From Basidiobolus meristosporus CBS 931.73 (Eukaryota > Fungi > Basidiobolomycota): 36,332 nucleotides of DNA. The notes beneath the pieces are model-generated. The model worked only from the letters and a program-made list of their open reading frames with translations. It searched no databases and was not told the origin of the DNA. The stretch's first letter is position 1. Every line of letters begins with the position of its first letter. The DNA lies in NCBI GenBank assembly GCA_002104905.1, contig MCFE01000786.1:1-36332 (forward strand), in the 5' to 3' direction. Shown one piece after another: positions 303-32,515 of the stretch. Position numbers and translations under genes: made by a program.

Positions 303-3300
303 ATGTTAAGTCTGGACACCATGACAATTGCAAAAACCCCACCACCTTGTATAGTTTCCTTAGAAGCCTATCTCAACTGTCTGAATAATCCAGCACTACT
401 CATATCGCACATCACTACACACTCGACACCTCCGAAATTCAATATACTCTACGCTAATAGCTATTTTCTCACACTATGCGGCTTGAGAAATTTTACCACC
501 ATTTCTAGCCAACTAAACGAACATATTGTCCCTGCAGACCAGGAAAAATTTCTCACCTGGCTTCAAAGAGTCAGCAAGAACGAAATATCTGATGAAGAAA
601 CCTGCACAATTCACATATATGGTGAGCACCCTGACTCGGAATCTACCGCGCAAAAAGGAAGGCCAAAGTGTAGATTGTCAAGTGAAAAAGTGAAGCTTGA
701 GTGGAGTGGAGTTAGTGTTAATAGCGAAGCAATAGTTCTGACAGGAGCAGTTATCGTCGAAGCAAAAAAGGGTAACGTGGCAGATGCGGAGGACTGTTTG
801 GTGGAAAAATCAGTTCAAGCTGAACATACAGAAGTCATAGAGCGTAAAGATACGAACTTGAAAGATGATTGGCAGAGCGTAGTAGAGGTAGGTTCAATGA
901 TACGTAACCTGTAATAGGCAAGCAGGTAAACATAGTAAACAACATCTAACATCCAAATCGTATTAAGCTAGGAAATCTTTTCACCGGTGGCGGTGCTACG
1001 GGAGAGCTCTTTCGTAACTATGATTGGAGCAATTCATTTCTAGGGCCAGTCACCAAATGGCCTCAATCCCTACTCACAGCCGTGTCATTATGCATAGCAT
1101 CTCCACTTCCTATGGCAGTATGGTGGGGACCACAGTTGACGATAATCTAGTAAGTTAAAGATAGCTAATTATATTTTTGGTGTTTGTCCAACTATTGCCA
1201 GCACCATTGTCGAGGATGTTTGGACTAATAAGGAGATCAATGTAGCAATGACGGATATTGTGGTGTCGCAGGACAAAAGCATCCAGCCATGTTTGGGAAA
1301 GAAGGACCAGTACATTGGGAGGAACTTTGGGAGGGCATAAGGCCGTTTGCAGAGCAAGCAATGCAAGGAAAAAACTCATACGTGGAAGACGATTTGTTGC
1401 TCATGACGAGGAGAGGGTATCTCGAGGAGACGTACATCACGGTAAGTGGGTGTGATGAGGTGAATCGAGGAGAGGGAGGGAGGGAAGAGACACAATACTA
1501 ACTAAATTGGTACTAGTGGTCATTTATACCGATAAGGCAGGAGGATGGCACGGTGGGTGGACTGCTCAATCCGTACATTGAAGTGACAGAGAGAATACTA
1601 GCCGAACGGAGGTTGAAAACACTCAGAGATATAAATGCTGAAACTAACGTTGCCAAAGATGCCAGGGAAGTATTTGAATCCATTGGAAAAGTACTTTCAG
1701 AGAATCCGTATGACATACCATTTGCGGCACTTTATACACACATCCTCCTAGACGATGAAGAAATGGAGGAATCCTATGACTCTGAGAGCAATGTCACGGC
1801 TAAATCGGAGTCCTTACATTTATCACAAACAGTTGGAATGCCAGAAGAACATCCATCAATGTTCCCTATCATTAGACTTACACCATCGTTCGAAGCCAAT
1901 GTCCTTCAAGACGCTGTGAGGCTTGCATACGAAAGCAAGCAAAGCGTGAAGATCGAGCTGGGTGAATGGTTTGGAGAAGTACCCATTCGCGGATGGGACA
2001 CCGCAACGACACAAGCAATAGTAAGTCCGATCATGGGGAACAACAAGGACGGAGTGATGGGAGTTCTAGTAATCGGACTCAATGCAAGACGAGAGTATGA
2101 TGAAAGTTATGAGACATTTGTCGAGCTCGTTTGTCGGCAAACAGGATCAGCCATCATCAACATCAGTGCATACGAGGAAGAGGTTCGGAGATTCAAGGAG
2201 TTGGCGGCAATTGACCGAGCCAAGACAGCATTCTTCAGCTCAGTTTCACACGAGCTCCGCACACCGCTGACCTTGATCTTGGGGCCAGTGAAAGACATGC
2301 TGTTGGAAAAAGACCTTGCCTCAGAGACGAGGTCAAAGATTGTCTATATGCATCGCAATGCGGAACGGTTGTTGCGACTAGTGAATCTACTGTTGGACTT
2401 CAGCAAAATCGAAGCAGGAAAGATGCAGGTAAGTGCCAGATATGTTCTTGAGACGGGAGTGAGGTGAATGAATGAGTGAGTACTAACGTGGAAACATGAT
2501 CATGTTGTAGGCCACTTTTCAAGAAACAAATCTGGGCAAGTTCACGGCCGACCTGGCGAGCATGTTCCGATCGGCGATCGAGAAAGGAGGAGTCCGGTTT
2601 GAGGTGGACTGTGAGAGGATGGAAAGGAATGTATGGGTTGACAGGGACATGTGGGAGAAGATCGTGTTCAACCTGATTGGGAATGCATTCAAATTCACGA
2701 TGAAAGGGTCGATCACAGTGAAGCTGGCATCATCTGAGGATGACAGGCAAGCGATACTGTCGGTGGCAGACACTGGGGATGGGATCCCGAGCCATGAGAT
2801 TATGCGAGTGTTTGAGCGGTTCCACCGAGTCGAAGGACGAAAAGGGCGCAGCCACGAAGGGACAGGAATTGGGCTTGCACTGACCCAAGAGCTCGCCAAG
2901 TTGCACGGTGGTACAGTTGGAGTGACCAGTGAGTTTGGTAAAGGAAGCATATTTACTGTGCATATTCCACTCGGGTGTGGCCATCTGCCCAGTGATCGGC
3001 TGGTCGAGCCTTGTCCTGCTGGAGAGGAAGAGCCACAGATGGAGCATCATTGTACATATGGACGATCATTTGTTGAAGAAGCGCGACACTGGCTTCCGAT
3101 GTCAGAGGAGGAGACGACCGAATATTACTCGAACACATCAAGTACCGATTCAAATGCCGGTGGTTCAGTCAATTTTCCAGTTGTCAGCCGTGGTTGTCGC
3201 GTACTACTTGCAGACGACAATGTGGACATGAGAAAGTACATCAAGAGCATCCTGGAGAAATGGTGGAGAGTGACCGAGGCAGAGGATGGAGAGCAAGCAT

Positions 3301-6139
3301 ACCAGATGGCAATTGCAGACCCACCAGATCTGATTGTGAGTGATGTGATGATGCCTAACCTCGATGGATATGGTCTGTTGAAGCTACTTCGAACTCAGCC
3401 TCTCACCAAATTCGTCCCAGTGATTCTGCTGAGTGCACAAGCTGGTGAGGAGGCACGAGTGGATGGGCTGAGTGCCGGGGCGGATGACTACCTTGTGAAG
3501 CCATTCAGTGCGAAGGAGCTGGTTGCCAGAGTGCATACCCATCTGGAACTCGGGAAGCTGAGGGTTGAACTAGAGAGGATGGTGAAAGATCGAACCCAAG
3601 AATTAATTGCGAGTGAAATGAGATATAAAATGCTTGCGAAGTTAAGTCCTGTTGGAATATTTAGACTAGATATCAAAGTAAGTACCCCGCCATATTATAT
3701 ATCTTGAATGATTACGTGCCAATTTTACTTCACCGACATTAATGAATTGTTATGTAAATAGGGCAATGTAACGTACACGAATGACAAGTGGTGGTGTATA
3801 TCAGGTCATAACCGAGATGTGGATCCCACTGCTGCCAACTTTTTGACGAGTGTTCATCCTGAAGATCGTGATCGAGCTGATAAATTATGGAAGGAAGCAA
3901 TTGAGCAATTCACACATTCAATAGTTGAATTTCGATGGAAACGCGCCAATGGAGAATCGCGTTGGTGTGTTTGTAAGTAGTTATTCAAATTGAACCTTAC
4001 TTCAACAATGACTCAATGCCATCTGCGTCTCTACTTAGGCGAAATGATAGTACAATACGATGAGGACATGAAACCATGCGGCTTTGTTGGTGCCATCACT
4101 GACCTAACCGAACGAAAGTTACTGGAACAAGAGCGTCTTTCTGCTGTCAGACTTGCAGAACAGCAACAACGGCATCGTGCCGAAGAAGCTGAGGAGGTGA
4201 AGAGGCAGCAGGAGCTGTATATTGATATGACCTGCCATGAGCTGCGCAATCCTCTCAACGGAATCTACCACAGTGCAGACCTGCTGCACGAATCACTGGA
4301 GAAAGTGCAGAAAGAGGTGCGTAAGGAAAGCATCGCGAAAGTGGCCAACTGGCTGGAGAAAGAGATTGAGGATGATCTGGATGTTGTTGATACGATCACC
4401 CTCTGTGCTCAGCACCAAAAGGTAGGGTTCTATTCTATGGATGAGGATGGCGACGATAGCACCAGAATGAGCACAAGAATGTGAGACCGGAGGTTAACAT
4501 GATTTCATTTGTATGAATAGAAAATTGCAGATGATGTGCTACACATGTCGAAGATCAACATGAATCTGCTGGTACTGTCGAAGACCAAGCTACGTCCTGT
4601 TGAGGTTGTCACGAATGTGATTCGAATGTTCGAGACCGAGGTGCGCCTTAAGAGGATAGATCTGCGGCTCGTTGTAGCTGAAGGGTACACTCACATGAAG
4701 GTGGACTGGGTGAAGGGGGATCCCACACGGTTCACACAGATATTGTAAGTAGACATATACAGTATCATTTGACGATTGGCTAATGTATTTCGCTTCGACT
4801 TATGCCAGAATCAATTTCCTTACAAATGCAATTCGGTTCACAGAGAAGGTGCCCTTTAGACAAGTAACAGTAACACTCGATGCATCTGATCGAGTACCCT
4901 CACAGTCAGCTATTGAGTTATCAAATAATGAAAAGGTGCTACAATTAACCGGAACGGCAACAAATGCCAGCGATGGGTGCACTACCAGCCCATTGGGTAA
5001 AGATCTAGATGAATGCGAATCTCCAACTTTGGGATTAGACGCAATCGACTTTGGAATGGAATGTGTTGGAGGCGAAGGTGCAGATAGACCAACTGCTGCA
5101 CACCCCGATGCAGTATACATTGCAGTTGCTATCAAGGACAGTGGGGTTGGAATGACCATTGAAGAGCAAGCTAACCTATTCCAACGATTTGCCCAAGCCA
5201 ACCCTCGAACATATGCCGAGTTTGGAGGAAGTGGACTAGGACTGTTCATCAGCAAGCGATTGGTGGAGCTGCATGATGGCAAGATCACTGTGAGATCGAA
5301 GAAAGGTGATGGTACAACATTCACTTTCTACCTGAAGTGCGATCGGGTGGATGTCATTGGCGAAGGAATATCTGAAGGACATGTTATAGCGGAAAACGAC
5401 CCTAATCTATTGGAATTCATGTATACTGAACCTCACAAACCTCCAGTGGATAATCTATCCACTTCACAGGGCAATAAGGATAAGCCAAAGAAGAGGCCCA
5501 TTGTTACCAAAACAAAAACGAAATTTTCGAAGGTCAAGGATGAGAACCTAGTCTATGCGAAGGAGAAGCTAGAATCCTCTGTGTGGGTCCAATCGGATGA
5601 TATGCAAAATTGTCCAACACCTGGGTTAGAACGTAATCGTAAAGCCACTTCAAGTGAATTACCCACCACACTAAGCAACAGTGTACTAGTTGTGGAGGAC
5701 AATCTTATCAACCAACGAGTGCTCAAACGACAACTGGAGCTAGCGGGATTCTCGGTTGGGGTGGCCAAACATGGCGCTGAAGCGTTAGAGGTGATGAGTA
5801 AGGTCAGCTATCACCTGATCCTAATGGTAAGTCATCCCCTTGAGAAGTGTGAGGCTATTTCATGTAATCAACGATGATTGACCGGAATGGGTTCGATTTG
5901 TGTAGGATCTGGAGATGCCAGTGATGGGTGGACTGGAATGCACGCAGCGGATCCGAGAGCTTGAGAAATCCGCGGGAGAGCAGCAAGTTCCGATTATCGG
6001 AGTGTCAGGGAATGCGCGGGAAGAGTACAGGCGCCTTGCCCTAGCATCAGGAATGACGGACTACGTTATCAAGCCATACGACAAGCAAGCGCTCATCAGC
6101 CTCATCAACTCATTCTTAGCTAGCATAGTGCCTATCTGA
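303..6139 (+). CDS. Dual hybrid histidine kinase, copy 1 (~1703 aa, 10 exons: 303-887, 968-1149, 1246-1441, 1517-2428, 2511-3677, 3762-3972, 4039-4421, 4521-4744, 4809-5826, 5906-6139)
   Basis: GT..AG introns with CTAAC-like branch sites; exons sum to 5112 nt in frame. HK1 H-box FFSSVSHELRTP, N-box NLIGNAFKFT, DTGDG, GTGIGL; REC1 LLADDN/VSDVMMP/KPF; HK2 H-box DMTCHELRNP, NFLTNAIRFT, DSGVG, GGSGLGL; REC2 VVEDN/LMDLEMP/KPY. Two transmitters plus two receivers is the architecture known for fungal dual HKs such as Cryptococcus Tco2. Confidence 0.92.
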
Positions 6140-7494
6140 ATTGCATCTGCATTGTACCATGTATATAGCATATACTAGATTGTCAAATATTTATGGCTCA
6201 ACCCATGAATAAACAAGGAGATGAATTATTGGAATGCCCTGTTCACTAGCAAGATCTCATACATTCGGGATTACAACCCAAGATTTCATGAAAATCATCA
6301 GGTCATTTGCACAATTCTGCAACAAATCAATCGAAATCAAAATATGTCTTCAATCAGTTGGTTTTTTACCCGCAAACAAATCATAAACCTGTAAATCATT
6401 CAGATGATGAGTAGATTGAGATTGCTATATAAATTTTTCAGCAACCACTATTAACATGGTGAATCAATGCACCCCTATCATACGCATTTTCTCCATGTGG
6501 GCGTTTGCACATTCTACATCCTTACTGAGCGAGTTTCCCTCTTGGAGTTCAGTGTCGATTATTCAATCCTGAATCATCTCAGTGACAATGTTGTTTAGTA
6601 CTGGTTCAAACATTGTTTACCAGACATGCGGTATTTGTCTAGGGTATCAAGTGTTTCCAAGAACCAGCAAACGAACCGAATGGCATGTTGAGTACTGGTA
6701 TATTAGCCTGCTTCCTTGCTTCAGTGCATGCCGACCTGGTAAAATGGGGACTTGATTCGAGATTGGTGTACCAAATAGGAAAGCAGAGTTCTTGGGGTTC
6801 AACAAGTGTAAGGTGACATGAGAATATAGATGGACTCTGCGGAGGATGAGTACTGGACAGCAAGTATGTGTTAGTGCATGCCGTTACGATAAGCAATTGA
6901 ACGAAACATATGCCTCGAAAGGTCCTTCTTTCGCGCAGCAGGCTGTTCATTTCACTGAGATATTATAAACCAGTTTGATGTTACATGAGTTTCGAGTTTA
7001 CTGTCTCAGTGAACTAGTTCAGTATTTCCCAATTAGGATCACTAATATACATCGAAATATGGTTGCCGATTGATATCACTCTCAAGCTAGAATTATTGAA
7101 ACGAATATAAAATTCCTATCATCATCGGCGTTTCTATCCATCACATATGATCTACCAAATCTACGGTAGCCCCATGAATCTTGCCCAGAAGGAATATTTG
7201 TGGTTCACTCTCTAAATTGAAGTTGGGATCAGTTACTACTCCAGGGAATACCCGCAGAAACATCCATATTGAGTAATGAGGTTATTATCTAATCAACTGA
7301 ATTGGGTACTCCCTCCATATAAGCTTCATTCATCAGCGTCTCTACAGTATTGGTTTCATCCGTGTCAGAGTACAATTTCGTCGCTATTTCCATTAGTTCT
7401 CTCAAAGAGTTGAGTAGTATATAAATTCATAGAAGACCAGTATTAATACCTATCAATATATTATCTATATTCCCGTCCAGAACTCTGCAACACG

Positions 7495-10400
7495 ATGCTC
7501 AGCCTGGACATATTGACGATTCCCGCAACCCCTCTACCTTGCGCTATGACACTTGAAGAATATCTCAACTGCCTGAACAGGCCTGCACTGCTTCTGAGCT
7601 ATACCCCCTCAGACACTACAGTCCTGCCTCCCGCTGTTACCTTACTCTACGCTAATGACTACTTTTTGACTTTGTGTGGTGCAAAAAATGTGACGATGTT
7701 ATCCGACCGACTAAAAGTACTCCTGACCCCCACAGATCAAACACATTTCCTTACCTGGCTTGAGAGAGTGAACTCCAACGAACTCTCTGACAGAGACCCC
7801 TGCAGCATACACATATCCGGAAAGCCACCGGACCTTACGCCTGACACAAAAAATACCAAACAGAAGAGCGAAAAGATACAGGCGGAGGTGAGGCTCGAGT
7901 GGACTGGGGTCAACATTCGTAACGAAGCGATTGTCTTGACGGCAACGGTTGTTGCTAAGAGTGGACAGGAAGTCACAAAAACAGCGGAGGAGGTTGGTTT
8001 GAGTAAAAAATTGACGGAACGAAACCCTACCGAAATCAGTGCGGATAAGGAGGATGATTGGCAGAGAGTACCACAGGTAGGTTCAGCATTTCAATCATGG
8101 GTTGCTCGCCATGAGTGAGTTGATATGTGTGAGGTAGACCGCTAACCATCAACCTTTCATGAAGCTGACAAGCACTCTCTCAGGTGGAGGAGCCATGGGG
8201 GAGATGCTACGTAACTACGATTGGAGCAATTCATCGTTGGGTCCGGTCACCAAGTGGCCCCAGTCCCTGCTCTCAGCAGTGTCGTTGTGCATGGCATCCA
8301 CACTTCCTATGGCGGTGTGGTGGGGACCACGATTCACGATCATCTAGTAAGTAGAGGTCAACCAAACACATTGGTGTGGTGGTTGCTGACCATGCGTGGC
8401 CGTCACCACCACCACTAGTGATCAGAGATGGACTAACAGCAAGATTTCGTGTAGCAATGATGGGTACTGTGGTGCAGCAGGCCAAAAACACCCCGCGATG
8501 TTTGGGCAAGAAGGCCCGGTGCACTGGGAAGAGCTTTGGGAGGGCATAGGACCATCGGCAGAACTAGCAATGCAGGGGACAAACTCATACGTGGAGGATG
8601 ATTTGCTACTTATGACCAGGCGAGGGTATCTCGAGGAGACGTACATTACGGTGAGTAAGGGTGATGAGCCGAATGAGTGGGAGAGAGGGAGAGATAATTT
8701 TCAAGTGGTACTAAACGAAGTGAATCTAGTGGTCATACATACCGATCAGACAGGAGGACGGCACAGTGGGGGGATTCCTCAACCCATACATTGAGGTGAC
8801 CGAGCGAATCCTTGCCGAGCGTAGGCTCAAGACACTCCGAGATTTCAGTTCTGAGATCAACCTGGCCAAAGACACCAGGGAGGTGTTCGACTCGATAGGA
8901 AAAGTACTTTCGGAGAACCCGTACGACATCCCATTCGCCGCACTCTACACACACATGACCCCAAATAAGGATGTGATTGAAGAGTCTTACGACGACGTGA
9001 GCAGCAGCACCAACACCAAGTCGGACTCATTATACCTCATTCAGACGGTGGGAATACCCGAGGATCATCCCTCCGTATTCTCTACCATTAGACTTTCACC
9101 ATCATTCCAAGCCAGTACTGTTCAGGAAGCAATGAGACTTGCATACGAAAGCAAGAAAATAGTGAAAATCAAGTTGGGCGAATGGTTTGGGGAGGTGCCA
9201 ATTCGCGGATGGGACACCGCGGCCAGGGAATTGATAGCAAGTCCAATCATGGGGAACAACAAGGATGGAGTGCTAGGGGTGTTGGTGATGGGACTCAATG
9301 CCAGATCTGAGTACGATGAGAACTACGAGACGTTTGTTGATCTCGTTTGTCGGCAAACAGGATCAGCCATCATCAACATCAGTGCATACGAGGAAGAGGT
9401 TCGGAGATTCAAGGAGTTGGCGGCGATTGACCGAGCCAAGACAGCATTCTTCAGCTCAGTTTCACACGAGCTCCGCACACCACTAACCTTGATCTTGGGG
9501 CCAGTGAAAGACATGCTGTCGGAGAAGGACCTGGTGCCGGAGACGAAGACCAAGCTCACGTACATGAACCGGAATGCAGAGCGGCTACTGCGACTAGTGA
9601 ATCTACTGTTGGACTTCAGCAAAATCGAAGCAGGAAGGATGCAGGTAAGTGACAGATCTGACTATAAAGCTGTAGTCAGGTGGATGAATGGATTGTGCTT
9701 GAGAGAGTGAGTGAGTAAATGTGTACTAACGTGGAAACATGATCATGTTGTAGGCCACTTTCCAAGAAACAAATCTAGGCAAGTTCACGGCCGACCTGGC
9801 GAGCATGTTCCGATCGGCGATCGAGAAAGGAGGAGTCCAGTTTGAGGTGGACTGTGAGAGGATGGAAAGGAATGTATGGGTTGACAGGGACATGTGGGAG
9901 AAGATCGTGTTCAACCTGATTGGGAATGCATTCAAATTCACGATGAAAGGGTCGATCACAGTGAAGCTGGCATCATCTGAGGATGACAGGCAAGCGATAC
10001 TGTCGGTGGCAGACACTGGGGATGGGATCCCGAGCCATGAGATTATGCGAGTGTTTGAGCGGTTCCACCGAGTCGAAGGACGAAAAGGACGCAGCCACGA
10101 AGGGACAGGAATTGGGCTTGCACTGACCCAAGAGCTCGCCAAGTTGCACGGTGGTACAGTTGGAGTGACCAGTGAGTTTGGTAAAGGAAGGTGAGTGAGA
10201 TTTAGCACTTTGGACGAGTGGCTCGTGGGATCCAAAGTGAGATGACTGTTGGAGAGGAGTAGCTAACAAGGAGCTGATTCATATTTCTTTAGTACGTTTA
10301 CAGTCCACATTCCACTTGGATGCAGCCATTTATCCCAGGACCGGTTGATTGAAACCTCAGAAGTAAATGACAATGAGGTTGAAGTGGACATGCCAAGTCG

Positions 10401-13400: not shown

Positions 13401-13511
13401 AGGCGCCTTGCCCTAGCATCAGGAATGACGGACTACGTTATCAAGCCATACGACAAGCAAGCGCTCATCGACCTCATCAACTCATTTTTAGTTAGTGTGA
13501 GCCCTATTTGA
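7495..13511 (+). CDS. Dual hybrid histidine kinase, copy 2 (~1702 aa, 11 exons: 7495-8076, 8165-8346, 8455-8650, 8730-9644, 9754-10190, 10293-11022, 11130-11340, 11407-11789, 11899-12122, 12184-13198, 13278-13511)
   Basis: Same catalytic motifs as copy 1; exons sum to 5109 nt in frame; all splice sites GT-AG. Confidence 0.92.
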
Positions 13512-14542
13512 AACTTAAGTACATTGTAGCATATAAATATTTTACATTAGAAAGGTATTTTTTTTTTTGGGGGGGGCCAAATATATGAATTGCACGAGTG
13601 ACTGGTTTGTAATTCGATAGTGGCGAGCTAATTCAAATTAGGCTACCCTGAAATCTATCATTATCTGTGCTTCTATTTATTCGAATTATCCAGTCCATCT
13701 GTAGCATCGTTCAGCTATGTACATGGCATTCCAATTCAAAGTTTGCCAACATTGATATATTAATTGCCTATACCCCTGTGTTAGCTTGAGAATGGACATT
13801 GTTAATCGACTAGTGTTCAGGATTGGTGGTGATCAATGAATTATATGCCTATAGTTTAATCTAATTATGCCGGCCTAGTTCAATACCCATTAAATTTCAG
13901 AACTTTAGTCTAATTCCCGTGTTCTTGACGGATGGCGCCGTGTAGAAATGTGGAGGTAAAGTTTAGTCATCAAAAGTAAGATCATGTAACCTTGGCAGAG
14001 TATAATATGAAACTGATGACTGTTTCATTCGTGTGTGTGGGGCAATGGGTCGCATTTTTCACCTGAAAATGGCTTAACGAATCGAGACTAGGCAGATAGG
14101 ACTTGGTGTATCAATTGCTCCAAATTGGAATTCCGGAATTATTATCAATCAGATACATTAAGTAAACCCTCCCAATTTCTTTAGCCTATCAGGCTGTGCT
14201 CTTGAGCAGTAGTAAGTGCCCACTCTTATCGGAGTTACCAAAATCTACGATGGTACGATGAACCTCGACCGATTTGGATTCTCGTGGTTCGCACCATATT
14301 GTCAATGGAATCAGCTATTACCCGAGAATGAAATTCACCGGGTATTCTTATTTAGTATAAGGGTTGTATGGGGATGCATGTAATATCTTCCTCAACCAAC
14401 CTTAGTTGTGATAATTTCCATACGAAACAAACTTCCACTTTACACTTTCTCCTTTACTTTCACTGGCACTCGCTAAGTAGTCAACTTGGTGACCCATAGT
14501 GTTATCAGTCCTTATTTTACAAACGTTTTCGTTCGCTAAGTT

Positions 14543-15738
14543 ATGCTCAGTCTTGATGAGATGACGGTACCAACTCCCCAATCACCTTGCAAGTTTACTT
14601 TAGAAGATTACTTGAGCTGTCTAAGTAGCCCTGCATTACTTCTACACTACTCTCCCGCCCACACAGAAACTGCACCCCCTACCATAACAATACAGTATGC
14701 CAACGAATACTTGCTTAATTTGTGTGGCGTGAAAAATCTGAGTAAGATTTCCAACCAGCTGCGAGATTTTATTTTTCCGGCAAATGAAGGGCAGTTTCTC
14801 AGCTGGCTACAAAGAGTGAATTCCAACCAAGCCTCCGATAACGAAACTTACACAATTCAAATTAACGACAGGCAACTGGACTCCATACACCACTCAAATT
14901 CGAGTAAAAAGAATAATGAAATGGTGATAGGTCAGGTGGAGCTCAGATGGAGCGGAGTCAGCATAAAGAACGAAGCAATAGTCCTCACGGGGATTGTTGT
15001 TACTAGGGAGAGCCCAAGTAGCATAGCAAGTGAGCTGGAAAATACCTCAAGTGAAGAATCGACCGAAGCAGAACACACGGAAATCATCGAAAGCGAGGTT
15101 GAGCTGGATGATTGGCAAAGCATACCCCAGGTAAGTTCCGTGATAAGAAACTAGTAATGATTAGGCGGTCAGGCGTAGGGTAGATGACTAATCCTCGAGT
15201 TTTGATCAAGCTCGCAACCATGCTGTCGGGTGGAGGCGTTATGGGGGAGATGCTACGTAACTACGATTGGAGCAGCTCGCCGTTAGGGCCAGTCACCAAG
15301 TGGCCCCAGTCCCTGCTCACAGCGGTGTCACTGTGCATGGCATCCACACTTCCTATGGCAGTGTGGTGGGGACCGCAGTTCACGATCATCTAGTAAGTAG
15401 AGGCCAACCATACGCATGAGTGCAGTGATTGTTGACCGAGCATGAGCAGAGCCGTTGTTGGAAGCAAACGAATTAACCATATATTTCGCGTAGCAATGAT
15501 GCATACCATGGGGTTGCAGGACAAAAGCACCCAAGCATGTTCGGGAAGGAAGGGCCCGTCCACTGGGCAGAACTCTGGGATGATGTAGGTCCGCTAGCGC
15601 ATTTAGCAATGCAAGGAACAAACTCGTATGTCGAAGACAACCTGCTGTTCATGACCAGGAAAGGGTATCTCGAGGAGACATATATCACGGTAAGCAAGTG
15701 TGATAAGATCTACTTTACGGGTGGCGGGGGGGGGAGCG

Positions 15739-15785
<47 letters not shown>

Positions 15786-18700
15786 AAGTGATGCTAACCA
15801 AACCGATTTTAGTGGTCGTACATACCGGTCAGACAGGAGGATGGCACAGTAGGCGGATTCCTGAATCCTTATATTGAGGTGACGGAGCGAATCCTTGCTG
15901 AGCGGAGACTCAAAACGCTCAAAGACATCAATGCAGACGCGGCAGTGGCAAAGGATACAAGAGAGATGCTCAGTTCGATAGGGACAGTCCTGTCTGAGAA
16001 TCCATATGACATACCATTTGCGGCCCTCTACACACACATTCTACCAGATGACGAGGAGATGGAAGAATCATACGACAACGTGAGCAGCACTACAACAAAG
16101 TCGGACACTCTACACCTGACGCAGACAATAGGAATGCCAGAAGAACATCCATCAATGTTCCCAATCATTAGACTTGCACCATCGTTCCATGCCAATATCT
16201 TGCAGGACGCAGTGAGACTTGCGTATGAAAGCAAGCAAAGCGTGAAGATCGAGCTGGGTGAATGGTTTGGGGAGGTGCCAATTCGTGGATGGGATGCCGC
16301 CGCTACCCAAGCAGTAGTAAGTCCGATCACAGGGAGCAACAAGGATGGAGTTCTAGGAGTGATAGTGATGGGAATCAATGCCAGACGCGAATATGATGAG
16401 AATTACGAGACGTTTGTTGATCTCGTTTGTCGGCAAACAGGATCAGCCATCATCAACATCAGTGCATACGAGGAAGAGGTTCGGAGATTCAAGGAGTTGG
16501 CGGCAATTGACCGAGCCAAGACAGCATTCTTCAGCTCAGTTTCACACGAGCTCCGCACACCACTAACCTTGATCTTGGGACCAGTCAAGGATTTACTATT
16601 AGAGAGAGATCTAGCAAAAGAAACCAGAACCAAGCTCACGTATATGAACCGGAATGCAGAGCGGCTACTGCGACTAGTGAATCTACTGTTGGACTTCAGC
16701 AAAATCGAAGCAGGAAAGATGCAGGTAAGTGCCAGATATGTTCTTGAGACGGGAGTGAGGTGAATGAATGAGTGAGTACTAACGTGGAAACATGATCATG
16801 TTGTAGGCCACTTTCCAAGAAACAAATCTGGGCAAGTTCACGGCCGACCTGGCGAGCATGTTCCGATCAGCGATTGAGAAAGGAGGAGTCCGGTTTGAGG
16901 TGGACTGTGAGAGGATGGAAAGGAATGTATGGGTTGACAGGGACATGTGGGAGAAGATCGTGTTCAACCTGATTGGGAATGCATTCAAATTCACGATGAA
17001 AGGGTCGATCACAGTGAAGCTGGCATCATCTGAGGATGACAGGCAAGCGATACTGTCGGTGGCAGACACTGGGGATGGGATCCCGAGCCATGAGATTATG
17101 CGAGTGTTTGAGCGGTTCCACCGAGTCGAAGGACGAAAAGGGCGCAGCCACGAAGGGACAGGAATTGGGCTTGCACTGACCCAAGAGCTCGCCAAGTTGC
17201 ACGGTGGTACAGTTGGAGTGACCAGTGAGTTTGGTAAAGGAAGGTGAGTGAGATTCAAATCTTTGGATATACGTCACGGTGCGATGGCTGATTTCGGAAA
17301 GTAACTAACACAGATTATACCAATGCTCATTAGTGTATTCACTGTACACATCCCGTTCGGATGTAGCCATCTTCCAAAGGATCGATTGATTACAGCCTCA
17401 ATGGAGCAGGTGAATGAGGTTGAGGTTGAGGTTGACATGCCCAGCAGATATGGCCGATCAATTGTGGATGAGGCTCGTCACTGGCTACCACAGTCGGATG
17501 AGGACAGCACCGAGTATCACTCGAACACATCAAGTACCGATTCAAATGCCGGTGGGTCAATCACCTTCCCAGTCGTCAGCCGTGGTTGTCGCGTACTACT
17601 CGCAGACGACAATGTGGACATGAGAAAGTACATCAAGAGCATCCTGGAGAAATGGTGGAGAGTGACCGAGGCAGAGGATGGAGAGCAAGCATACCAGATG
17701 GCAATTGCAGACCCACCAGATCTGATTGTGAGTGATGTGATGATGCCTAACCTCGATGGATATGGTCTGTTGAAGCTACTTCGAACTCAGCCTCTCACCA
17801 AATTCGTCCCAGTGATTCTGCTGAGTGCACAAGCTGGTGAGGAGGCACGAGTGGATGGGCTGAGTGCCGGGGCGGATGACTACCTTGTGAAGCCATTCAG
17901 TGCGAAGGAGCTGGTTGCCAGAGTGCATACCCATCTGGAACTCGGGAAGCTGAGGGTTGAACTAGAGAGGATGGTGAAGGAAAGAACCAAGGAGCTGATT
18001 GCCAGTGAAGCCAGATACAAGACTCTCACTAAGCTTAGTCCTGTCGGGATATTCAGAACAGATTTGGAGGTAAGTGTTTTGCCAGAAGTAAGGAACTGGG
18101 GCTTGCCCCATCTTGTTTCCACAACGTGTGCTTTGATATTTGAGCCTAGTACTAACTTCTGGATTGAACATTGCAGGGGAATGTAACGTACACAAATGAC
18201 AAGTGGTGGAGCATCTCGGGTCACAATCGGGAGATGGATCCATCAGCTGTTGATTTCCTGTCCAGCGTGCATCCTGATGATCGTGAACATGTTGATCGAA
18301 TTTGGAAAGAGGCACAACGTGCTCAAGTAAGTTCAGCTGTTGAGTTCAGATGGAAGTGGGCAAACGGAGAAACTCGCTGGTGCTTCAGTACGTGAATGCC
18401 TATTTATATTCCCCGAGTAGGTTATATTAACAGTATGCTTACCCAAATTGTATGTTGCTAGACGAAATGATTTTGCAACATGATAATGAAATGAAGCCAT
18501 GTGGTTTTGTTGGAGCACTAACTGATCTTACCGAACGGAAGCGGTTGGAACAAGAGCGCCTTTCTGCTGTCAGACTTGCAGAACAGCAACAACGGCATCG
18601 TGCCGAAGAAGCTGAGGAGGTGAAGAGGCAGCAGGAGCTGTATATTGATATGACCTGCCATGAGCTGCGCAATCCTCTCAACGGAATCTACCACAGTGCA

Positions 18701-20558
18701 GACCTGCTGCACGAATCACTGGAGAAAGTGCAGAAAGAGGTGCGTAAGGAAAGCATCGCGAAAGTGGCCAACTGGCTGGAGAAAGAGATTGAGGATGATC
18801 TGGATGTTGTTGATACGATCACCCTCTGTGCTCAGCACCAAAAGGTAGGGTTCTATTCTATGGATGAGGATGGCGACGATAGCACCAGAATGAGTACAAG
18901 TATGTGAGACCGGAGGTTAACATGATTTCATTTGTATGAATAGAAAATTGCAGATGATGTGCTACACATGTCGAAGATCAACATGAATCTGCTGGTACTG
19001 TCGAAGACCAAGCTACGTCCTGTTGAGGTTGTCACGAATGTGATTCGAATGTTTGAGACCGAGGTGCGTCTGAAGGAGATAGATTTGAAGTTAGTTTTGG
19101 CTGAAGGGTACACTCGCATGAAGGTGGACTGGGTGAAGGGGGATCCCACACGGTTCACACAGATATTGTAAGTAGACATATACAGTATCATATGACAAAG
19201 GGTTAACGTATTTTACTTTGGTTTAATCAGAATCAACTTTATGACGAACGCGATTCGGTTCACGGAGAGGGTTCCATTTAGACAAGTGGTTGTCACACTC
19301 GATGCATCTGACCGGGTACCCTCACAGCCAGTTATTGAATCGCCAGCTATGGAGACCGTGCGACAAACAGGTGATACGATTAGTGAGGACGATGTGGGCT
19401 GCAAGATCAACCATTCAACCAAGATTAAAGCTGAACGTGAATTACCAATGGTTGGGTCCGATTCTGGGGATGGTGGGAAGGCGTATTTTGGAGCTGAAGG
19501 AAACAGACCAGCAGTCGCACACCCTGATGCTTTATACATTGCAGTCGCCATCAAGGATAGTGGAGTTGGGATGACAACTGATGAACAGGCGAACCTATTC
19601 AAGCGATTCGCCCAAGCCACCCCTCGAACATACGCCGAGTTTGGAGGAAGTGGACTAGGACTGTTCATCAGCAAGCGATTGGTGGAGCTGCATGATGGCA
19701 AGATCACTGTGAGATCGAAGAAAGGTGATGGTACAACATTCACTTTCTACCTGAAGTGTGATCGAGTGGATGATATCGAAGAAGGAAAAGCTGAAGGATG
19801 CGTAGGGGTCGGGAGTAGTCCTAATGCAGCGGAGATGATGTACACAGAGCCACACAAGCCACCGGTAAATAACCTACCGACCACTGAAGAGCAGAAGAGC
19901 AAGCCAAAGAAGAAGGCAACCGCACTCAAAGCAAAGAAGAAAGGCTCGAAGGCTCGAGATGAGAAGCTGGTCTGCACGAAGGAGAGACTGGATTCTTCGG
20001 TTTGGAGACGATCCAATGATATGGAATCGAACCCCCGAACTGGCTTGGAGAGCAAATGCCATACCAAATCTCAGGGTATATCGGTCGGAACCAGCTACAG
20101 CATTCTAGTTGTGGAGGACAATCTTATCAACCAACGAGTGCTCAAACGACAACTGGAGCTAGCGGGATTCTCGGTTGGGGTGGCCAAACATGGTGCTGAA
20201 GCGTTAGAGGTGATGAGTAAGGTCAGCTATCACCTGATCCTAATGGTAAGTCATCCCCTTGAGAAGTGTGAGGCTATTTCATGTAATCAACGATGATTGA
20301 CCGGAATGGGTTCGATTTGTGTAGGATCTGGAGATGCCAGTGATGGGTGGACTGGAATGCACGCAGCGGATCCGAGAGCTTGAGAAATCCGCGGGAGAGC
20401 AGCAAGTTCCGATTATCGGAGTGTCAGGGAATGCGCGGGAAGAGTACAGGCGCCTTGCCCTAGCATCAGGAATGACGGACTACGTTATCAAGCCATACGA
20501 CAAGCAAGCGCTCATCAGCCTCATCAACTCATTCTTAGCTAGCATAGTGCCTATCTGA
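14543..20558 (+). CDS. Dual hybrid histidine kinase, copy 3 (~1705 aa, 11 exons: 14543-15130, 15211-15392, 15494-15689, 15813-16724, 16807-17243, 17334-18069, 18177-18387, 18462-18844, 18944-19167, 19231-20245, 20325-20558)
   Basis: Same catalytic motifs; exons sum to 5118 nt in frame; all splice sites GT-AG. Confidence 0.92.
15742..15782. repeat. Intronic microsatellite (GA)19(GT)1 in HK copy 3
   Basis: Read directly, preceded by a G9 run. Confidence 0.95.
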
Positions 20559-21663
20559 ATTGCATCTGCATTGTACCATGTATATAGCCTATACTAGATT
20601 GTCAACTTTTGGATATGAAATAAAAAAACATCTGTAGGTATCAAGATCTTGTAAACTTATTACGACTCAAGATCGCAGGAACATTTCTAGGTGTCTTGCT
20701 GAAACTATTCTGACACTTGATTTAAATGGTTTACTGGTTGAAATGGTGATATGAACCAACCTCATTTTACCATCCAACGAAATGTGAATTTAATATACTG
20801 CCAAGTACAGTGTATCATAGATGATGTAATCATTGCCAAATTCTATTCCAAGCTCTGGGAGATTCCCATGACGTAATTCGCGATACAGGTACTGCTCCTT
20901 TCAAGCAAATGGGAAACTCGGGTTAAATAGGCTAATCCACCAAGACAGCGTTTTCCATGCCCCTGCTAACATATATGTCTATTCCGATGCCGTCTGTGAT
21001 TACGAATTAGATATCAAAGTAGCTGTATAGAACCGTTGGTGTTTTGAGCAGGTGTAATGTGGAGATTTCGGTAGTTGAGCTGGGCTTTTTGGCTCATTCG
21101 TCTGTAAAATCAAATTGCTAATTCTTGGAGAATAAGGGGTAAGGTGGATGGTCTAGTAGGAGCAACAGACCATGTGGGGCTTGGGTTTTCGGATTGGTGA
21201 TTCATCTGAATCAAAATTGCATGTTGATTGATAATGCTGCGATGTGCTGCATAGGACATCAGATTTACCCGATGAACCAGTTTATTACTCTTTTAAGCAG
21301 GCTAACAAATTATCATTGTAGCTGCTGTCTCATCTCATCAAGAATGATCTTTAAATCTACGATCGCAGTGCCGGCCTCGTCCAAATTTGGTATTGGTTCA
21401 AATTGACAATAGGTTATCTATAACTCGAGGAGAAATTCACCAAAAGCATTCATGTTCGACATCAAGATTGTTGTCTAATGCACTTTAATAGATCCTCCTT
21501 ACCCATATCCAACTCACCTGCTCCTTTCACAATTTAAATATTGTCAACACCTCTGTACTTTCTCTGGTCCTCTAAACGACACTCGTATACCACTTATTAA
21601 TAGTATTCGATAGTAATTGCATCAATCCCTCCATCAAAACCTCCGTCCGTAACTCTGCAAAAA

Positions 21664-24600
21664 ATGCTCAGTTTGGACATAATGCCAGCTCCAACACACC
21701 CCTCACCTTACGCACTTACTTTGGAGGACTACCTGAGCTGCCTAAGTAGGCCTGCACTACTCCTGAAATACACGCCTCCCAATACTACAACTTTATCTCC
21801 TGCTGTATCCATACTATATGCCAATGACTATTTCCTCAGCATATGTGGCACAAAGAACGTGTCGACTATATCCAACCGGCTGAAGCAATTGATTGCTCCA
21901 AAAGATGAGGCTCCATTTCTCAACTGGCTTCAAAAAGTGAGCGTAAACGAAGTTTCCGATAAAGACACCTGTACTATTCGCATTTGCACCCAGCAACTTC
22001 ACCCAGCATCTTACTCAAACGGCAGCCGAAAAAGCGAAATGGCCAGAGCAGAAGTGGAGCTCAGATGGAGCGGAGTCAGCATAAGGAACGAAGCAATAGT
22101 CCTCACGGGGATTGTTGTTACTAGGGAGAGCCCAAGTAGCATAGCAAGTGAGCTGGAAAATACCTCAAGTGAAGAATCGACCGAAGCAGAACACACGGAA
22201 ATCATCGAAAGCGAGGTTGAGCTGGATGATTGGCAAAGCATACCCCAGGTAAGTTCCGTGATAAGAAACTAGTAATGATTAGGCGGTCAGGCGTAGGGTA
22301 GATGACTAATCCTCGAGTTTTGATCAAGCTCGCAACCATGCTATCGGGTGGAGGCGTTATGGGGGAGATGCTACGTAACTACGATTGGAGCAGCTCGCCG
22401 TTAGGGCCAGTCACCAAGTGGCCCCAGTCCCTGCTCACAGCGGTGTCACTGTGCATGGCATCCACACTTCCTATGGCAGTGTGGTGGGGACCGCAGTTCA
22501 CGATCATCTAGTAAGTAGAGGCCAACCATACGCATGAGTGCAGTGATTGTTGACCGAGCATGAGCAGGGCCGTTGTTGGAAGCAAACGAATTAACCATAT
22601 ATTTCGCGTAGCAATGATGCATACCATGGGGTTGCAGGACAAAAGCACCCAAGCATGTTTGGGAAGGAAGGGCCCGTCCACTGGGCAGAACTCTGGGATG
22701 ATGTAGGTCCGCTAGCGCATTTAGCAATGCAAGGAACAAACTCGTATGTCGAAGACAACCTGCTGTTCATGACCAGGAAAGGGTATCTCGAGGAGACATA
22801 TATCACGGTAAGCGAGTGTGATAAGATCTACTTTACGGGTGGCGGGGGGGAGCGGATGAGAGAGAGAGAGAGTGTGTGTGTGTGTGTGTGGACAAGTGAT
22901 GCTAACCAAACCGATTTTAGTGGTCGTACATACCGGTCAGACAGGAGGATGGCACAGTAGGCGGATTCCTGAATCCTTATATTGAGGTGACGGAGCGAAT
23001 CCTTGCTGAGCGGAGACTCAAAACGCTCAAAGACATCAATGCAGACGCGGCAGTGGCAAAGGATACAAGAGAGATGCTCAGTTCGATAGGGACAGTCCTG
23101 TCTGAGAATCCATATGACATACCATTTGCGGCCCTCTACACACACATTCTACCAGATGACGAGGAGATGGAAGAATCATACGACAACGTGAGCAGCACTA
23201 CAACAAAGTCGGACACTCTACACCTGACGCAGACAATAGGAATGCCAGAAGAACATCCATCAATGTTCCCAATCATTAGACTTGCACCATCGTTCCATGC
23301 CAATATCTTGCAGGACGCAGTGAGACTTGCGTATGAAAGCAAGCAAAGCGTGAAGATCGAGCTGGGTGAATGGTTTGGGGAGGTGCCAATTCGTGGATGG
23401 GATGCCGCCGCTACCCAAGCAGTGGTAAGTCCGATCACAGGGAGCAACAAGGATGGAGTTCTAGGAGTGATAGTGATGGGAATCAATGCCAGACGCGAAT
23501 ATGATGAGAATTATGAGACGTTTGTTGATCTCGTTTGTCGGCAAACAGGATCAGCCATCATCAACATCAGTGCATACGAGGAAGAGGTTCGGAGATTCAA
23601 GGAGTTGGCGGCAATTGACCGAGCCAAGACAGCATTCTTCAGCTCAGTTTCACACGAGCTCCGCACACCACTAACCTTGATCTTGGGGCCAGTGAAAGAC
23701 ATGCTGTTGGAAAAAGATCTAGCATCTGAGACCAAGATCAAACTCACATACATGCATCGCAATGCGGAACGGCTATTACGATTAGTAAATCTATTGATGG
23801 ACTTCAGCAAAATCGAAGCAGGAAGGATGCAGGTAAGTGACAGATCTGACTATAAAACTGTAGTCAGGTGGATGAATGGATTGTGCTTGAGAGAGTGAGT
23901 GAGTAAATGTGTACTAACGTGGAAACATGATCATGTTGTAGGCCACTTTCCAAGAAACAAATCTAGGCAAGTTCACGGCCGACCTGGCGAGCATGTTCCG
24001 ATCAGCGATTGAGAAAGGAGGAGTCCGGTTTGAGGTGGACTGTGAGAGGATGGAAAGGAATGTATGGGTTGACAGGGACATGTGGGAGAAGATCGTGTTC
24101 AACCTGATTGGGAATGCATTCAAATTCACGATGAAAGGGTCGATCACAGTGAAGCTGGCATCATCTGAGGATGACAGGCAAGCGATACTGTCGGTGGCAG
24201 ACACTGGGGATGGGATCCCGAGCCATGAGATTATGCGAGTGTTTGAGCGGTTCCACCGAGTCGAAGGACGAAAAGGGCGCAGCCACGAAGGGACAGGAAT
24301 TGGGCTTGCACTGACCCAAGAGCTCGCCAAGTTGCACGGTGGTACAGTTGGAGTGACCAGTGAGTTTGGTAAAGGAAGGTGAGTGAGATTCAAATCTTTG
24401 GATATACGTCACGGTGCGATGGCTGATTTCGGAAAGTAACTAACACAGATTATACCAATGCTCATTAGTGTATTCACTGTACACATCCCGTTCGGATGTA
24501 GCCATCTTCCAAAGGATCGATTGATTACAGCCTCAATGGAGCAGGTGAGTGAGGTTGAGGTTGAGGTTGACATGCCCAGCAGATATGGCCGATCAATTGT

Positions 24601-27515
24601 GGATGAGGCTCGTCACTGGCTACCACAGTCGGATGAGGACAGCACCGAGTATCACTCGAACACATCAAGTACCGATTCAAATGCTGGTGGGTCAATCACC
24701 TTCCCAGTCGTCAGCCGTGGTTGTCGCGTACTACTCGCAGACGACAATGTGGACATGAGAAAGTACATCAAGAGCATCCTGGAGAAATGGTGGAGAGTGA
24801 CCGAGGCAGAGGATGGAGAGCAAGCATACCAGATGGCAATTGCAGACCCACCAGATCTGATTGTGAGTGATGTGATGATGCCTAACCTCGATGGATATGG
24901 TCTGTTGAAGCTACTTCGAACTCAGCCTCTCACCAAATTCGTCCCAGTGATTCTGCTGAGTGCACAAGCTGGTGAAGATTCAAGGGTCGATGGCTTGAGC
25001 TCAGGGGCGGATGACTACCTTGTGAAGCCATTCAGTGCGAAGGAGCTGGTTGCCAGAGTGCATACCCATCTGGAACTCGGGAAGCTGAGGGTTGAACTAG
25101 AGAGGATGGTGAAGGAAAGAACCAAGGAGCTGATTGCCAGTGAAGCCAGATACAAGACTCTCACTAAACTTAGTCCGGTTGGTATATATAGAGCCAATTT
25201 GGAGGTATGTATTATGCCACTACTTCAGTGCAGTAATAGTATGAACATTTATAACTTTATGTTTATAGGGTCACATAACGTATACCAATGACAAGTGGTG
25301 GAGCATCTCGGGCCACGACCGAGAGGCCGATCCAACAGCCTCTAATTTCTTTTCCAGTGTACATTCTGCGGACCGTGAATACGTCGAACGGATGTGGAAC
25401 GAAGCCACTGAAACACAAACAAATTCAACCATTGAGTTCAGATGGAAGTGGGACAATGACGAACCGCACTGGTGTTTTAGTATGTGTTTATATTTGGTTG
25501 CTATATGATATAGGTAACTAATCTGCTCACATAATACTAGGTGAAATGATTGTTGAATATGATAATGAAATGAAGCCATGTGGTTTTGTTGGAGCACTAA
25601 CTGATCTTACCGAACGGAAGTTACTGGAGCAAGAGCGCCTTTCTGCTGTCAGACTTGCCGAACAGCAACAACGGCATCGTGCCGAAGAAGCTGAGGAGAT
25701 GAAGAGGCAGCAGGAGCTGTATATTGATATGACCTGCCATGAGCTGCGCAATCCTCTCAACGGAATCTACCACAGTGCAGACCTGCTGCACGAATCACTG
25801 GAGAAAGTGCAGAAAGAGGTGCGTAAGGAAAGCATCGCGAAAGTGGCCAACTGGCTGGAGAAAGAGATTGAGGATGATCTGGATGTTGTTGATACGATCA
25901 CCCTCTGTGCTCAGCACCAAAAGGTAGGGTTCTATTCTATGGATGAGGATGGCGACGATAGCACCAGAATGAGTACAAGTATGTGAGACCGGAGGTTAAC
26001 ATGATTTCATTTGTATGAATAGAAAATTGCAGATGATGTGCTACACATGTCGAAGATCAACATGAATCTGCTGGTACTGTCGAAGACCAAGCTACGTCCT
26101 GTTGAGGTTGTCACGAATGTGATTCGAATGTTCGAGACCGAGGTGCGTCTGAAGGAGATAGATTTGAAGTTAGTTTTGGCTGAAGGGTACACTCACATGA
26201 AGGTGGACTGGGTGAAGGGGGATCCCACACGGTTCACACAGATATTGTAAGTAGACATATACAGTATCATATGACAAAGGGTTAACGTATTTTACTTTGG
26301 TTTAATCAGAATCAACTTTATGACGAACGCGATTCGGTTCACGGAGAGAGTTCCATTTAGACAAGTGGTTGTCACACTCGATGCATCTGACCGAGTACCG
26401 TCACCAGGTGTTATTGGACCACCGAGTAATGTAGAATTACTCAAATCAAATCAAGTAGACAATTCGAATGCTCGGATACAAGCGAGTCCAGAAAACCATA
26501 GATCATTGGTGCTGGAACCGGATTTGAGTAGTGATGCTCTAGATATTGTCGGCGATGATGAAGCAGCTATCAGATCCGATGTCGTCTACATCGCAGTGGC
26601 TATTAAGGATAGTGGCGTTGGAATGACCACTGAAGAGCAGGCAAACCTCTTTCAACGGTTTGCCCAAGCAAATCCACGAACATATGCCGAATTTGGTGGA
26701 AGTGGATTGGGACTGTTCATCAGCAAGCGATTGGTCGAGCTTCATGATGGGGATATTACAGTGAGCTCCAAGAAGGGAGATGGCACAACATTCACCTTCT
26801 ATATCAAGTGCGAAAGAGTATACGAAGTCACCGGCAACTCTGCTAACAATGACCGTTCCGATTGCTATGATATAGGTGACATGAAACCATCAAGAACTAT
26901 CGAAAACATTTGCGCTGAAGCTTCTTTGGTTCGTTCTATTGAATCATGTAAACAATCCAACAAGGTCAAAGCCGCTGAGCTCAAGTCTCGCAAACTCAAG
27001 AAAAAAGTAACTGCTAGCAATATAGCGATCAAGCCGGATGCCGCCCCCAATTCCACTCTCAATGCACAGAGTAACGCATACCGTGTACTTGTGGTAGAGG
27101 ATAATCTTATCAATCAACGTGTACTTAAGCGCCAATTACAGTTGGAAGGTTATTGCGTGGGCGTAGCAAAGCACGGAGCTGAGGCACTAGAAGTGCTTAA
27201 GAAAGATAGCTACCACTTAATTCTGATGGTTCGTGCGAATTGAAAATGAAAGGTTGCGCAGTGCACTAACATTGGTCTCTTTTTTAGGACCTTGAAATGC
27301 CCGTAATGGGTGGCCTGGAATGTACCCGTCGGATTCGTGATATTGAAAAAACTAACAATGTACAGCAGATTCCAATTATTGGAGTTTCCGGCAATGCTAG
27401 GGATGAATACAGGCGTTTAGCAATAGACTCTGGAATGTCTGATTATATCATTAAGCCATATGAAAAGCAAGAACTAATTAACCTAGTTGCTAATAGTATT
27501 CAAATGAGTAAATAA
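21664..27515 (+). CDS. Dual hybrid histidine kinase, copy 4 (~1670 aa, 11 exons: 21664-22248, 22329-22510, 22612-22807, 22921-23832, 23942-24378, 24469-25204, 25269-25479, 25541-25923, 26023-26246, 26310-27228, 27288-27515)
   Basis: Same catalytic motifs; exons sum to 5013 nt in frame; the 3' third is more divergent and has a shorter linker. Confidence 0.92.
22858..22889. repeat. Intronic compound microsatellite (GA)7(GT)9 in HK copy 4
   Basis: Read directly; same intron position as the copy 3 repeat, preceded by a G7 run. Confidence 0.95.
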
Positions 27516-30777: not shown

Positions 30778-30823
30778 GATGTGGATAAACAAGAATGCAA
30801 TATGCTGACATGGGGAACGTGCG

Positions 30824-30830
30824 TTATATA
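30824..30830 (-). promoter_or_regulatory. Putative TATA box (TATATAA) of the peptidase gene
   Basis: Lies ~47 nt upstream of ATG 30777, inside the spurious 5' ORF extension, which supports the shorter start. Confidence 0.5.
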
Positions 30831-32513: not shown

Positions 32514-32515
32514 GA

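Follow-up and report, generated by a model that had tools for sequence, protein, structure and literature searches.

A dual group of histidine kinases (HKs) and hybrid histidine kinases (HHKs) was reportedly described from Basidiomycota by Lavin et al. in 2014. Dual histidine kinases are a named fungal group, which was first thought to be restricted to Basidiomycota, has Tco2 as its first characterised member, and was later reported in early-diverging fungi and Amoebozoa as well (PMC4965123, PMC5285503, PMC6324907). Their function has been termed obscure (PMC6324907). Here we analyse a window that comprises the entire contig MCFE01000786.1 of Basidiobolus meristosporus CBS 931.73 (assembly GCA_002104905.1; 36,332 bp), in which four dual hybrid histidine kinase genes stand in tandem beside a telomere. 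Judging from sequence comparison, the locus very probably represents a lineage-specific subtelomeric tandem expansion of this known fungal family.

With the fungal dual HHK group (Tco2 of Cryptococcus neoformans) the Basidiobolus kinases share two HisKA-HATPase_c-REC modules, PAS and GAF inputs and the lack of a clear membrane segment, and a basidiomycete relative from Meredithblackwellia eburnea is 36% identical over 83% of the length. They differ from this group in the presence of at least 10 genes in one species, in the arrangement as tandem arrays at chromosome ends and in their homogenised catalytic parts. The same doubled module, likened by layout only, occurs in the DhkD branch of Amoebozoa and in dual kinases of Klebsormidium (Kabbara et al. 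2019, PMC6324907), that is in other lineages, for which no subtelomeric arrays have been reported. Dual kinases of early-diverging fungi were treated by Herivaux et al. 2017, in whose study Basidiobolus was checked only for hormone-receptor homologues (PMC5285503). Among the papers accessible to us, none describes dual kinases of Basidiobolus, their number or their location; a preprint on the kinases of Entomophthoromycotina makes no mention of dual kinases, and a preprint on 19 Basidiobolus genomes contains nothing on kinases, ploidy or telomeres.

Multigene families at chromosome ends are familiar from other fungi, e.g. the FLO, PAU and MAL genes of yeast, EPA of Candida glabrata, TLO of Candida albicans and MSG of Pneumocystis. 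The Basidiobolus arrays resemble them in that paralogues lie within tens of kb of telomeres, with end-to-end copying of blocks, conversion, copy-number differences, pseudogenes and telomere-linked retroelements. They are unlike them in their cargo, a large cytosolic signalling enzyme instead of a surface, nutrient-uptake or effector protein, in being under purifying selection, and in a conversion that is confined to catalytic segments. The initial annotation of the window supposed an undescribed system. This does not apply to the protein class, which is known, nor to the genes, which are in GenBank, but it does apply to the subtelomeric tandem arrays: we found no description of tandem or subtelomeric histidine kinase arrays in the literature accessible to us, in which papers on both subtelomeres and histidine kinases concern unrelated single genes. 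The undescribed part is thus the behaviour of the genome, i.e. expansion at a chromosome end, duplication of a block from end to end, birth and loss of genes, and confined conversion.

The four genes and their domain architecture

Comparison of the window with itself reveals four head-to-tail units of approximately 7.1 kb each on the + strand, whose pairwise DNA identity is patchy and ranges from 77 to 96%. The intergenic spacers among the four copies are unrelated in sequence, and the 3' third of u4 has diverged from the remaining copies. The genes and the telomere are:

303-6139, + strand: u1, dual hybrid histidine kinase, 10 exons, 1703 aa (conserved GT..AG; identical to P0156)
7495-13511, + strand: u2, dual hybrid histidine kinase, 11 exons, 1702 aa (conserved GT..AG)
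14543-20558, + strand: u3, dual hybrid histidine kinase, 11 exons, 1705 aa (conserved GT..AG and joints in run X3)
21664-27515, + strand: u4, dual hybrid histidine kinase, 11 exons, 1670 aa (conserved GT..AG and joints in run X3)
36061-36332, + strand: telomere, TTAGGG x45, at the contig end

The array had been placed 9 kb from the telomere; the location is correct, and the distance from the stop codon of u4 (27515) to the first telomere repeat (36061) amounts to 8.5 kb. At the other side, u1 starts only 302 bp inside the contig edge.

Conserved GT..AG introns were the basis of the gene models, and seven of these introns are backed by spliced contigs of the public run X3. Two of these are joined in u3 (19168-19230 and 20246-20324) and five in u4 (22249-22328, 22511-22611, 22808-22920, 23833-23941 and 24379-24468), and all seven map to conserved GT..AG sites in every copy. 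The remaining three introns were placed by conservation across the copies. For intron 8, which is without RNA support, we chose the splice sites that all four copies share; the alternative sites of one Joint Genome Institute (JGI) model were rejected, being mutated in u1 and interrupted by stops in u2. The resulting u1 model is identical to the public protein P0156 (K493DRAFT_342709), and u2 is ~98% identical to the public P0160, which is annotated without its N-terminus. All four genes are deposited in GenBank as hypothetical proteins or histidine kinases, with truncated JGI models of u2 and u4. Intron 3 varies in length (123 nt in u3, 113 nt in u4, 75-79 nt in u1 and u2), and in u3 it includes a perfect (GA)19.5 microsatellite at 15742-15780.

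The claim of four intact tandem dual hybrid histidine kinases is borne out by the models, which contain no internal stops or frameshifts. Their layout is an N-terminal PAS, a PAS-like domain, GAF, a first HisKA-HATPase-REC module, a coiled coil, a further PAS (PAS2) and a second HisKA-HATPase-REC module. Pfam finds, on the stop-free frames of u1 and u4 and in this order, GAF (weak), HisKA, HATPase_c, Response_reg, PAS_3, HisKA, HATPase_c and Response_reg, and on P0156 two matches each of HisKA, HATPase_c and Response_reg, plus PAS; u2 and u3 possess the same domains by alignment of the four models. The H-box histidine, the N, G1 and G2 residues and the receiver aspartate and lysine are kept in both modules of all four genes. 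In u1 they are H566, N683, D712, G742, D903 and K955 in module 1, and H1151, N1293, D1397, G1427, D1627 and K1682 in module 2. By these residues both modules are predicted to be catalytically competent. Intron 10 is followed directly, in all four genes, by the codon for the phospho-accepting aspartate of receiver 2 (5906, 13278, 20325 and 27288). A convincing membrane segment is found in none of the four proteins (highest 19-aa Kyte-Doolittle mean 1.5-1.6), and the kinases are probably soluble sensors.

The N-terminal sensor is encoded by the first exon:

303-887, + strand: exon 1 of u1, N-terminal variable PAS-fold sensor domain (AlphaFold2 and PDB fold match)

Its counterparts lie at 7495-8076 (u2), 14543-15130 (u3) and 21664-22248 (u4). 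Pfam on exons 1-3 alone gave no match across the N-terminal 340 aa. An AlphaFold2 model of exon 1 computed with a 16-row family alignment reaches a predicted local distance difference test (pLDDT) score of 80-92 for residues 15-110 and 128-152, and its top fold matches in the PDB are all PAS or LOV domains, with template modelling (TM) scores, by target, of up to 0.76. The single-sequence model is unusable (pLDDT 40), and the PAS fold appears only with the 16-row alignment. According to this model, exon 1 is predicted to encode a PAS fold.

Sister array, selection and gene conversion

A search for paralogues, proposed as a check in the initial annotation, led to two further loci. On the contig MCFE01000568.1 (57 kb), five dual kinases in tandem, k1-k5, are followed by an S9 peptidase gene on the - strand and a long interspersed nuclear element (LINE); this contig aligns colinearly with the window, in its spacers as well as its genes, at 82-88% identity. 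Genes k2, k3 and k5 are intact, with intron sites conserved by projection. In contrast, k1 (local piece L002, 2124-7995) is damaged by stops in exon 1 and exon 4, and k4 (L001, 16960-23079) by a 107-nt insertion with stops in exon 4. The damage in k1 and k4 lies in the sensor half, their catalytic exons are open, and JGI annotated shorter proteins there. Because a gene for elongation factor Ts (EF-Ts) precedes k1 in the sister locus, u1 is probably the first gene of the window array. The third locus is a more distant single paralogue, P0153, which ends 2.2 kb short of the TTAGGG telomere that terminates the 204-kb contig MCFE01000038.1; inverted repeats around it were not found. The family in B. 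meristosporus thus comprises at least 10 genes, at least nine of them close paralogues.

Intron 5 is missing exactly from u1 with the frame intact (2945-3057, compared with 10191-10292, 17244-17333 and 24379-24468 in the other copies), and it is also missing from k1, the positional orthologue of u1 (junction 27-mer at local position 4799 of the sister contig). The pattern points to an old precise loss, or to a gain in the other copies.

Between the positional orthologues u2-k2/k3 and u4-k5, the synonymous divergence (dS) is mostly 0.3-0.7 along the gene, with one interval at 1.5. The ratio of nonsynonymous divergence (dN) to dS in these orthologues is 0.01-0.14 in the PAS-like, GAF, catalytic and receiver domains, 0.17-0.31 in HATPase2, which holds a variable insert, 0.24-0.40 in the N-terminal PAS (within the array 0.22-0.33) and 0.34-0.60 in the second linker. 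It is therefore below ~0.4 in every domain, 0.60 is reached only in the second linker, and values near or above 1 in the variable part are not seen. All domains appear, by these ratios, to be under purifying selection.

These values bear on the possibility that the copies are redundant and slowly decaying duplicates, some of them non-functional. Such decay would agree with the two sister genes, out of five, in which stops or insertions disrupt exon 1 or exon 4, and with the truncated JGI models of u2 and u4. However, every catalytic residue is kept in the four window genes, dN/dS against the orthologues is as low as 0.01-0.14 in the conserved domains, and all four genes are represented in transcript contigs (see below); we regard decay as quite unlikely.

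Divergence within the array is distributed very unevenly along the gene. Exon 1 is the most divergent part (dN 0.23-0.47, dS 0.7 to saturated), and dS is 1.1-1.9 or saturated in the N-terminal PAS, the PAS-like domain, GAF (most pairs) and PAS2, as it is in both linkers between the more distantly related copies. The exceptions in GAF are u2-u3 and u2-u4 (dS 0.77-0.80), and u3-u4, which share a recent tract. Within-array dS is only 0.01-0.25 in HisKA1-HATPase1, REC1 and HisKA2. The introns are either 98-100% identical or at background (~0.5-0.65), and the matching partner shifts along the gene: intron 4 pairs u1 with u3 (100% identity) and u2 with u4 (99%), with 65% across the two pairs; intron 6 is the same in u2 and u3; in intron 8, u1, u3 and u4 agree at 98-100%; and in intron 10, u1, u2 and u3 agree at 100%, and u4 cannot be aligned. 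The catalytic and receiver segments coincide with tracts of 176-1267 bp that are 98-100% identical, in addition to which there is one 3.1-kb tract between u3 and u4 at 96%. The tracts followed along u1 are:

2373-2945, + strand: conversion tract, end of HisKA1, intron 4 and HATPase1 (u1 against u3 16669-17241, 570/573)
3183-3586, + strand: conversion tract, REC1 (u1 against u2 10528-10931, 399/404; against u3 17575-17978, 403/404)
4137-4645, + strand: conversion tract, HisKA2 and intron 8 (u1 4137-4645 against u4, 505/509)
5686-6186, + strand: conversion tract, REC2, intron 10, stop codon and 47 nt past it (u1 against u3 20105-20605, 499/501)

The first of these includes a stretch shared by three copies (u1 2480-2945, u2 9723-10188 and u4 23911-24376). 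In REC1, u1 3183-3448 matches u4 24710-24975 at 265/266; in HisKA2, u1 4137-4424 matches u2 at 288/288 and u1 4137-4630 matches u3 at 492/494; and in REC2, u1 5686-6097 matches u2 at 410/412.

Constraint at the level of codons was considered as a cause of the low dS and rejected because of the identity found in introns. The identity of introns, together with the unrelated spacers, identifies gene conversion as the cause. Gene conversion that is local to the array homogenises the catalytic and receiver segments, while the sensor regions stay divergent. The comparison across arrays leads to the same result: dS of REC1 is 0.035-0.15 within the array and 0.47-0.56 between cross-array positional orthologues, and dS of the core is 0.05-0.44 within an array as opposed to 0.5-0.7 between cross-array non-orthologues. 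The cores consequently resembled one another by the time the block was copied, and homogenisation has since gone on separately in the two arrays. As the arrays diverged together but were homogenised separately, they provide an internally controlled example of gene conversion limited to parts of genes.

Reality and transcription of the copies

Repeated genes on a short contig raise the question of an assembly or haplotype artefact, in which repeats are collapsed or expanded or two alleles are counted as loci. The window is indeed a complete but short contig, with 302 bp ahead of u1, and a second contig is colinear with it. However, the four copies differ by 4-23% in DNA and in about half of the residues of the first 190 aa, and a duplication by the assembler is therefore impossible; their spacers are unrelated, the u3-u4 spacer, which is unique, is crossed by short-read contigs of the runs X1 and X2 with a uniform depth of ~170, and u1-, u2- and u4-specific words are present in contigs. 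The two arrays are 12-18% apart (dS ~0.5) and differ in copy number and pseudogene state, which is beyond allelic difference, though old homeologues are possible. We consider an artefact highly improbable, and words specific to each of the four copies have been recovered. Some odd joints in X1 and X2 (19772>20105, and 20542>22054 with 30 letters on the short side) lie at the edges of shared tracts and were dismissed as graph artefacts.

Run X3 behaves differently. It contains the seven GT..AG joints mentioned above and has zero depth over 20608-21411 in the u3-u4 spacer, and is taken as transcript-derived because it is spliced and without intergenic coverage. Its public label, 'DNA?', is apparently wrong or missing, given this transcriptome-like behaviour. 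Copy-specific 30-mers, which occur once in the window, were found in independent contigs for exon 9 of u1 and exon 1 of u3 (both X3), and in contigs of X1-X3 for exon 4 of u2 and exon 10 of u4; the u1-specific 30-mer lies at 5656-5685 and the u2-specific one starts at 9524. Further X3 contigs match u3 without differences at 19285-19699 and 19874-20134, and another (21530-22083) covers the unique 5' end of u4. The expectation that more than one copy is transcribed is hence supported for u1-u4, each with 30-mers of its own in the spliced run. The two outcomes that the initial annotation named as fatal to it, fewer real copies or a single transcribed copy, thus do not hold, to the extent that contigs can tell.

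The initial annotation interpreted the array as a subtelomeric contingency locus. In a true locus of this kind, copies would be silenced or switched, or would turn over fast among strains, resulting in differing sensor repertoires. Several observations are in line with it: three loci lie near telomeres, the copies undergo ectopic recombination and conversion, there are four versus five copies with two of them damaged in the sister array, and the N-terminal PAS is the fastest-evolving structured part. The subtelomeric dynamics of the family are accordingly upheld by the sister array with its same LINE, the telomere-near paralogue, the mosaic conversion and the gain and damage of copies. The contingency part of the claim, i.e. 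switching or a very fast adaptive turnover, is not supported by the other data. Unique sequence of every copy is present in one spliced, transcript-derived run, which argues against a strict one-at-a-time expression in bulk; dN/dS stays at 0.01-0.40, with the second linker alone up to 0.6; and orthologues have remained intact since a split at dS ~0.5. Transcript contigs of all four genes and these dN/dS values point to stable genes under purifying selection. All copies are probably expressed together, and nothing in the data indicates a switchable contingency locus, which we regard as unlikely.

Origin of the family and meaning of the arrays

Phylogenetic trees place the Basidiobolus genes in a single clade, split into a single-copy branch (P0153 and two B. 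ranarum genes) and an array branch with a partial B. ranarum protein as its sister. Among the array genes the positional orthologues pair as u2/(k2,k3), u3/k4 and u4/k5. Concerted evolution can cluster copies of the same species, which leaves it uncertain when the expansion took place with respect to B. ranarum. Contigs of B. ranarum measure only 3-19 kb and show a lone single-copy gene surrounded by ordinary genes; the telomere motif is absent from the two examined, and the contigs are too short for context. The next relatives are Spizellomycetales chytrids and Bifiguratus, and then a pucciniomycete on a long branch. This last protein, P0172, has a branch of 2.97 and only one clear HisKA and one clear REC. 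The fungal relatives (B. ranarum, Spizellomycetales, Bifiguratus and the pucciniomycete) are 36-70% identical over 83-96% of the length, and bacterial proteins fall outside the fungal clade, which is separated from them with a Shimodaira-Hasegawa-like approximate likelihood ratio (SH-aLRT) value of 100.

Basidiobolus is known for horizontal gene gains, and an origin of the array from a bacterial block, acquired by horizontal transfer and then amplified, has some evidence in its favour. Many bacterial proteins are ~44% identical in HATPase-REC and have PAS-GAF-kinase-receiver layouts, some of them dual, and the adjoining S9 peptidase gene is intron-less. Bacterial PAS-GAF hybrid kinases with a second module (proteins of metagenome-assembled genomes, Kofleriaceae and Pyxidicoccus) follow the same sensor-kinase-receiver order with ~44-48% identity in HATPase-REC. 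Yet these bacterial kinases are intron-less and cover approximately half of the fungal protein, whereas the Basidiobolus genes have 9-10 spliceosomal introns at conserved positions and their nearest relatives are fungal. Conserved introns and the tree argue against a recent bacterial origin, which appears very improbable. Horizontal transfer and assembly artefact were both rejected as the main account, the former on the conserved introns and the fungal tree, the latter on copy divergence and spanning contigs.

With a lineage-specific subtelomeric expansion as the preferred explanation, the history of the locus is as follows. The array of four genes and the S9 peptidase is old (sensor dS >1), and the block was copied to a second chromosome end at dS ~0.5. 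Since this copying, each array has converted catalytic and receiver segments, introns included, among its own copies, with the sensor PAS, PAS2 and linkers remaining divergent and all domains under purifying selection. As to function, the N-terminal sensors may set the activity of kinase 1, which would phosphorylate receiver 1; kinase 2 may in turn be controlled by receiver 1 by way of the coiled coil and PAS; and receiver 2 would pass the phosphate to the histidine phosphotransfer (HPt) protein and response regulators of the cell. The fungus would thus hold kinases with different inputs and near-identical phosphotransfer parts.

Several points weigh against this explanation. Transcription is read from assembled contigs of a single run, labelled 'DNA?', and contigs carry no levels or conditions. 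The order of the phosphorelay, its partners and the sensed signals are deduced from domain order, and the terminal telomere of MCFE01000568.1, which was read to within 2 kb of its end, from the shared LINE and one telomere-repeat dimer. The list of family members in the genome is a lower bound (k1 is absent from one match table), and we do not claim that all members are subtelomeric. Finally, dS in the sensor regions is saturated, so that positive selection there is neither shown nor excluded.

The arrays could, as a tentative and rather doubtful proposal, be viewed as an evolvable 'sensor library', in which conversion in the kinase and receiver parts keeps the copies compatible with a single HPt/response-regulator pathway and selection keeps the N-terminal PAS, PAS2 and linkers different. 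If true, many inputs would lead into one output, a mode of receptor-family evolution undescribed for eukaryotic two-component systems. At least nine close paralogues with near-identical enzyme parts and divergent sensors also constitute a natural domain-swap series, suited to questions of N-terminal PAS sensing and of communication between the modules, in a fungus that is culturable, a gut commensal and an occasional human pathogen. Histidine kinases are of interest as antifungal targets because animals do not have them. More generally, chromosome ends can diversify intracellular signalling proteins, beyond surface or nutrient genes.

The telomere side of the array contains two further features:

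28720-30855, - strand: S9 prolyl oligopeptidase gene, 711 aa, intron-less (Pfam Peptidase_S9, E 7.6e-60)
33558-36061, - strand: telomere-adjacent LINE (Pfam RVT_1; reverse-transcriptase open reading frames 33625-34653 and 34584-36026)

The S9 peptidase gene closes both kinase arrays on the telomere side. Its counterpart on MCFE01000568.1 encodes 685 aa on the - strand after the fifth kinase (local piece L003, 16512-18569), and DNA identity of the S9 block between the two loci is 87.6%. The gene is without introns beside kinase genes that have 9-10 each, which makes a bacterial origin of this peptidase worth considering. The LINE is 97.9% identical (blastn) to the element beyond the sister array (c568 local 41653-44156, i.e. 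MCFE01000568.1 ~49978-52481), compared with 82-88% in the flanking DNA, and has therefore undergone recent movement or conversion. Within the window, 32489-33081 and 33526-34129 form a shorter internal repeat at 89.6%.

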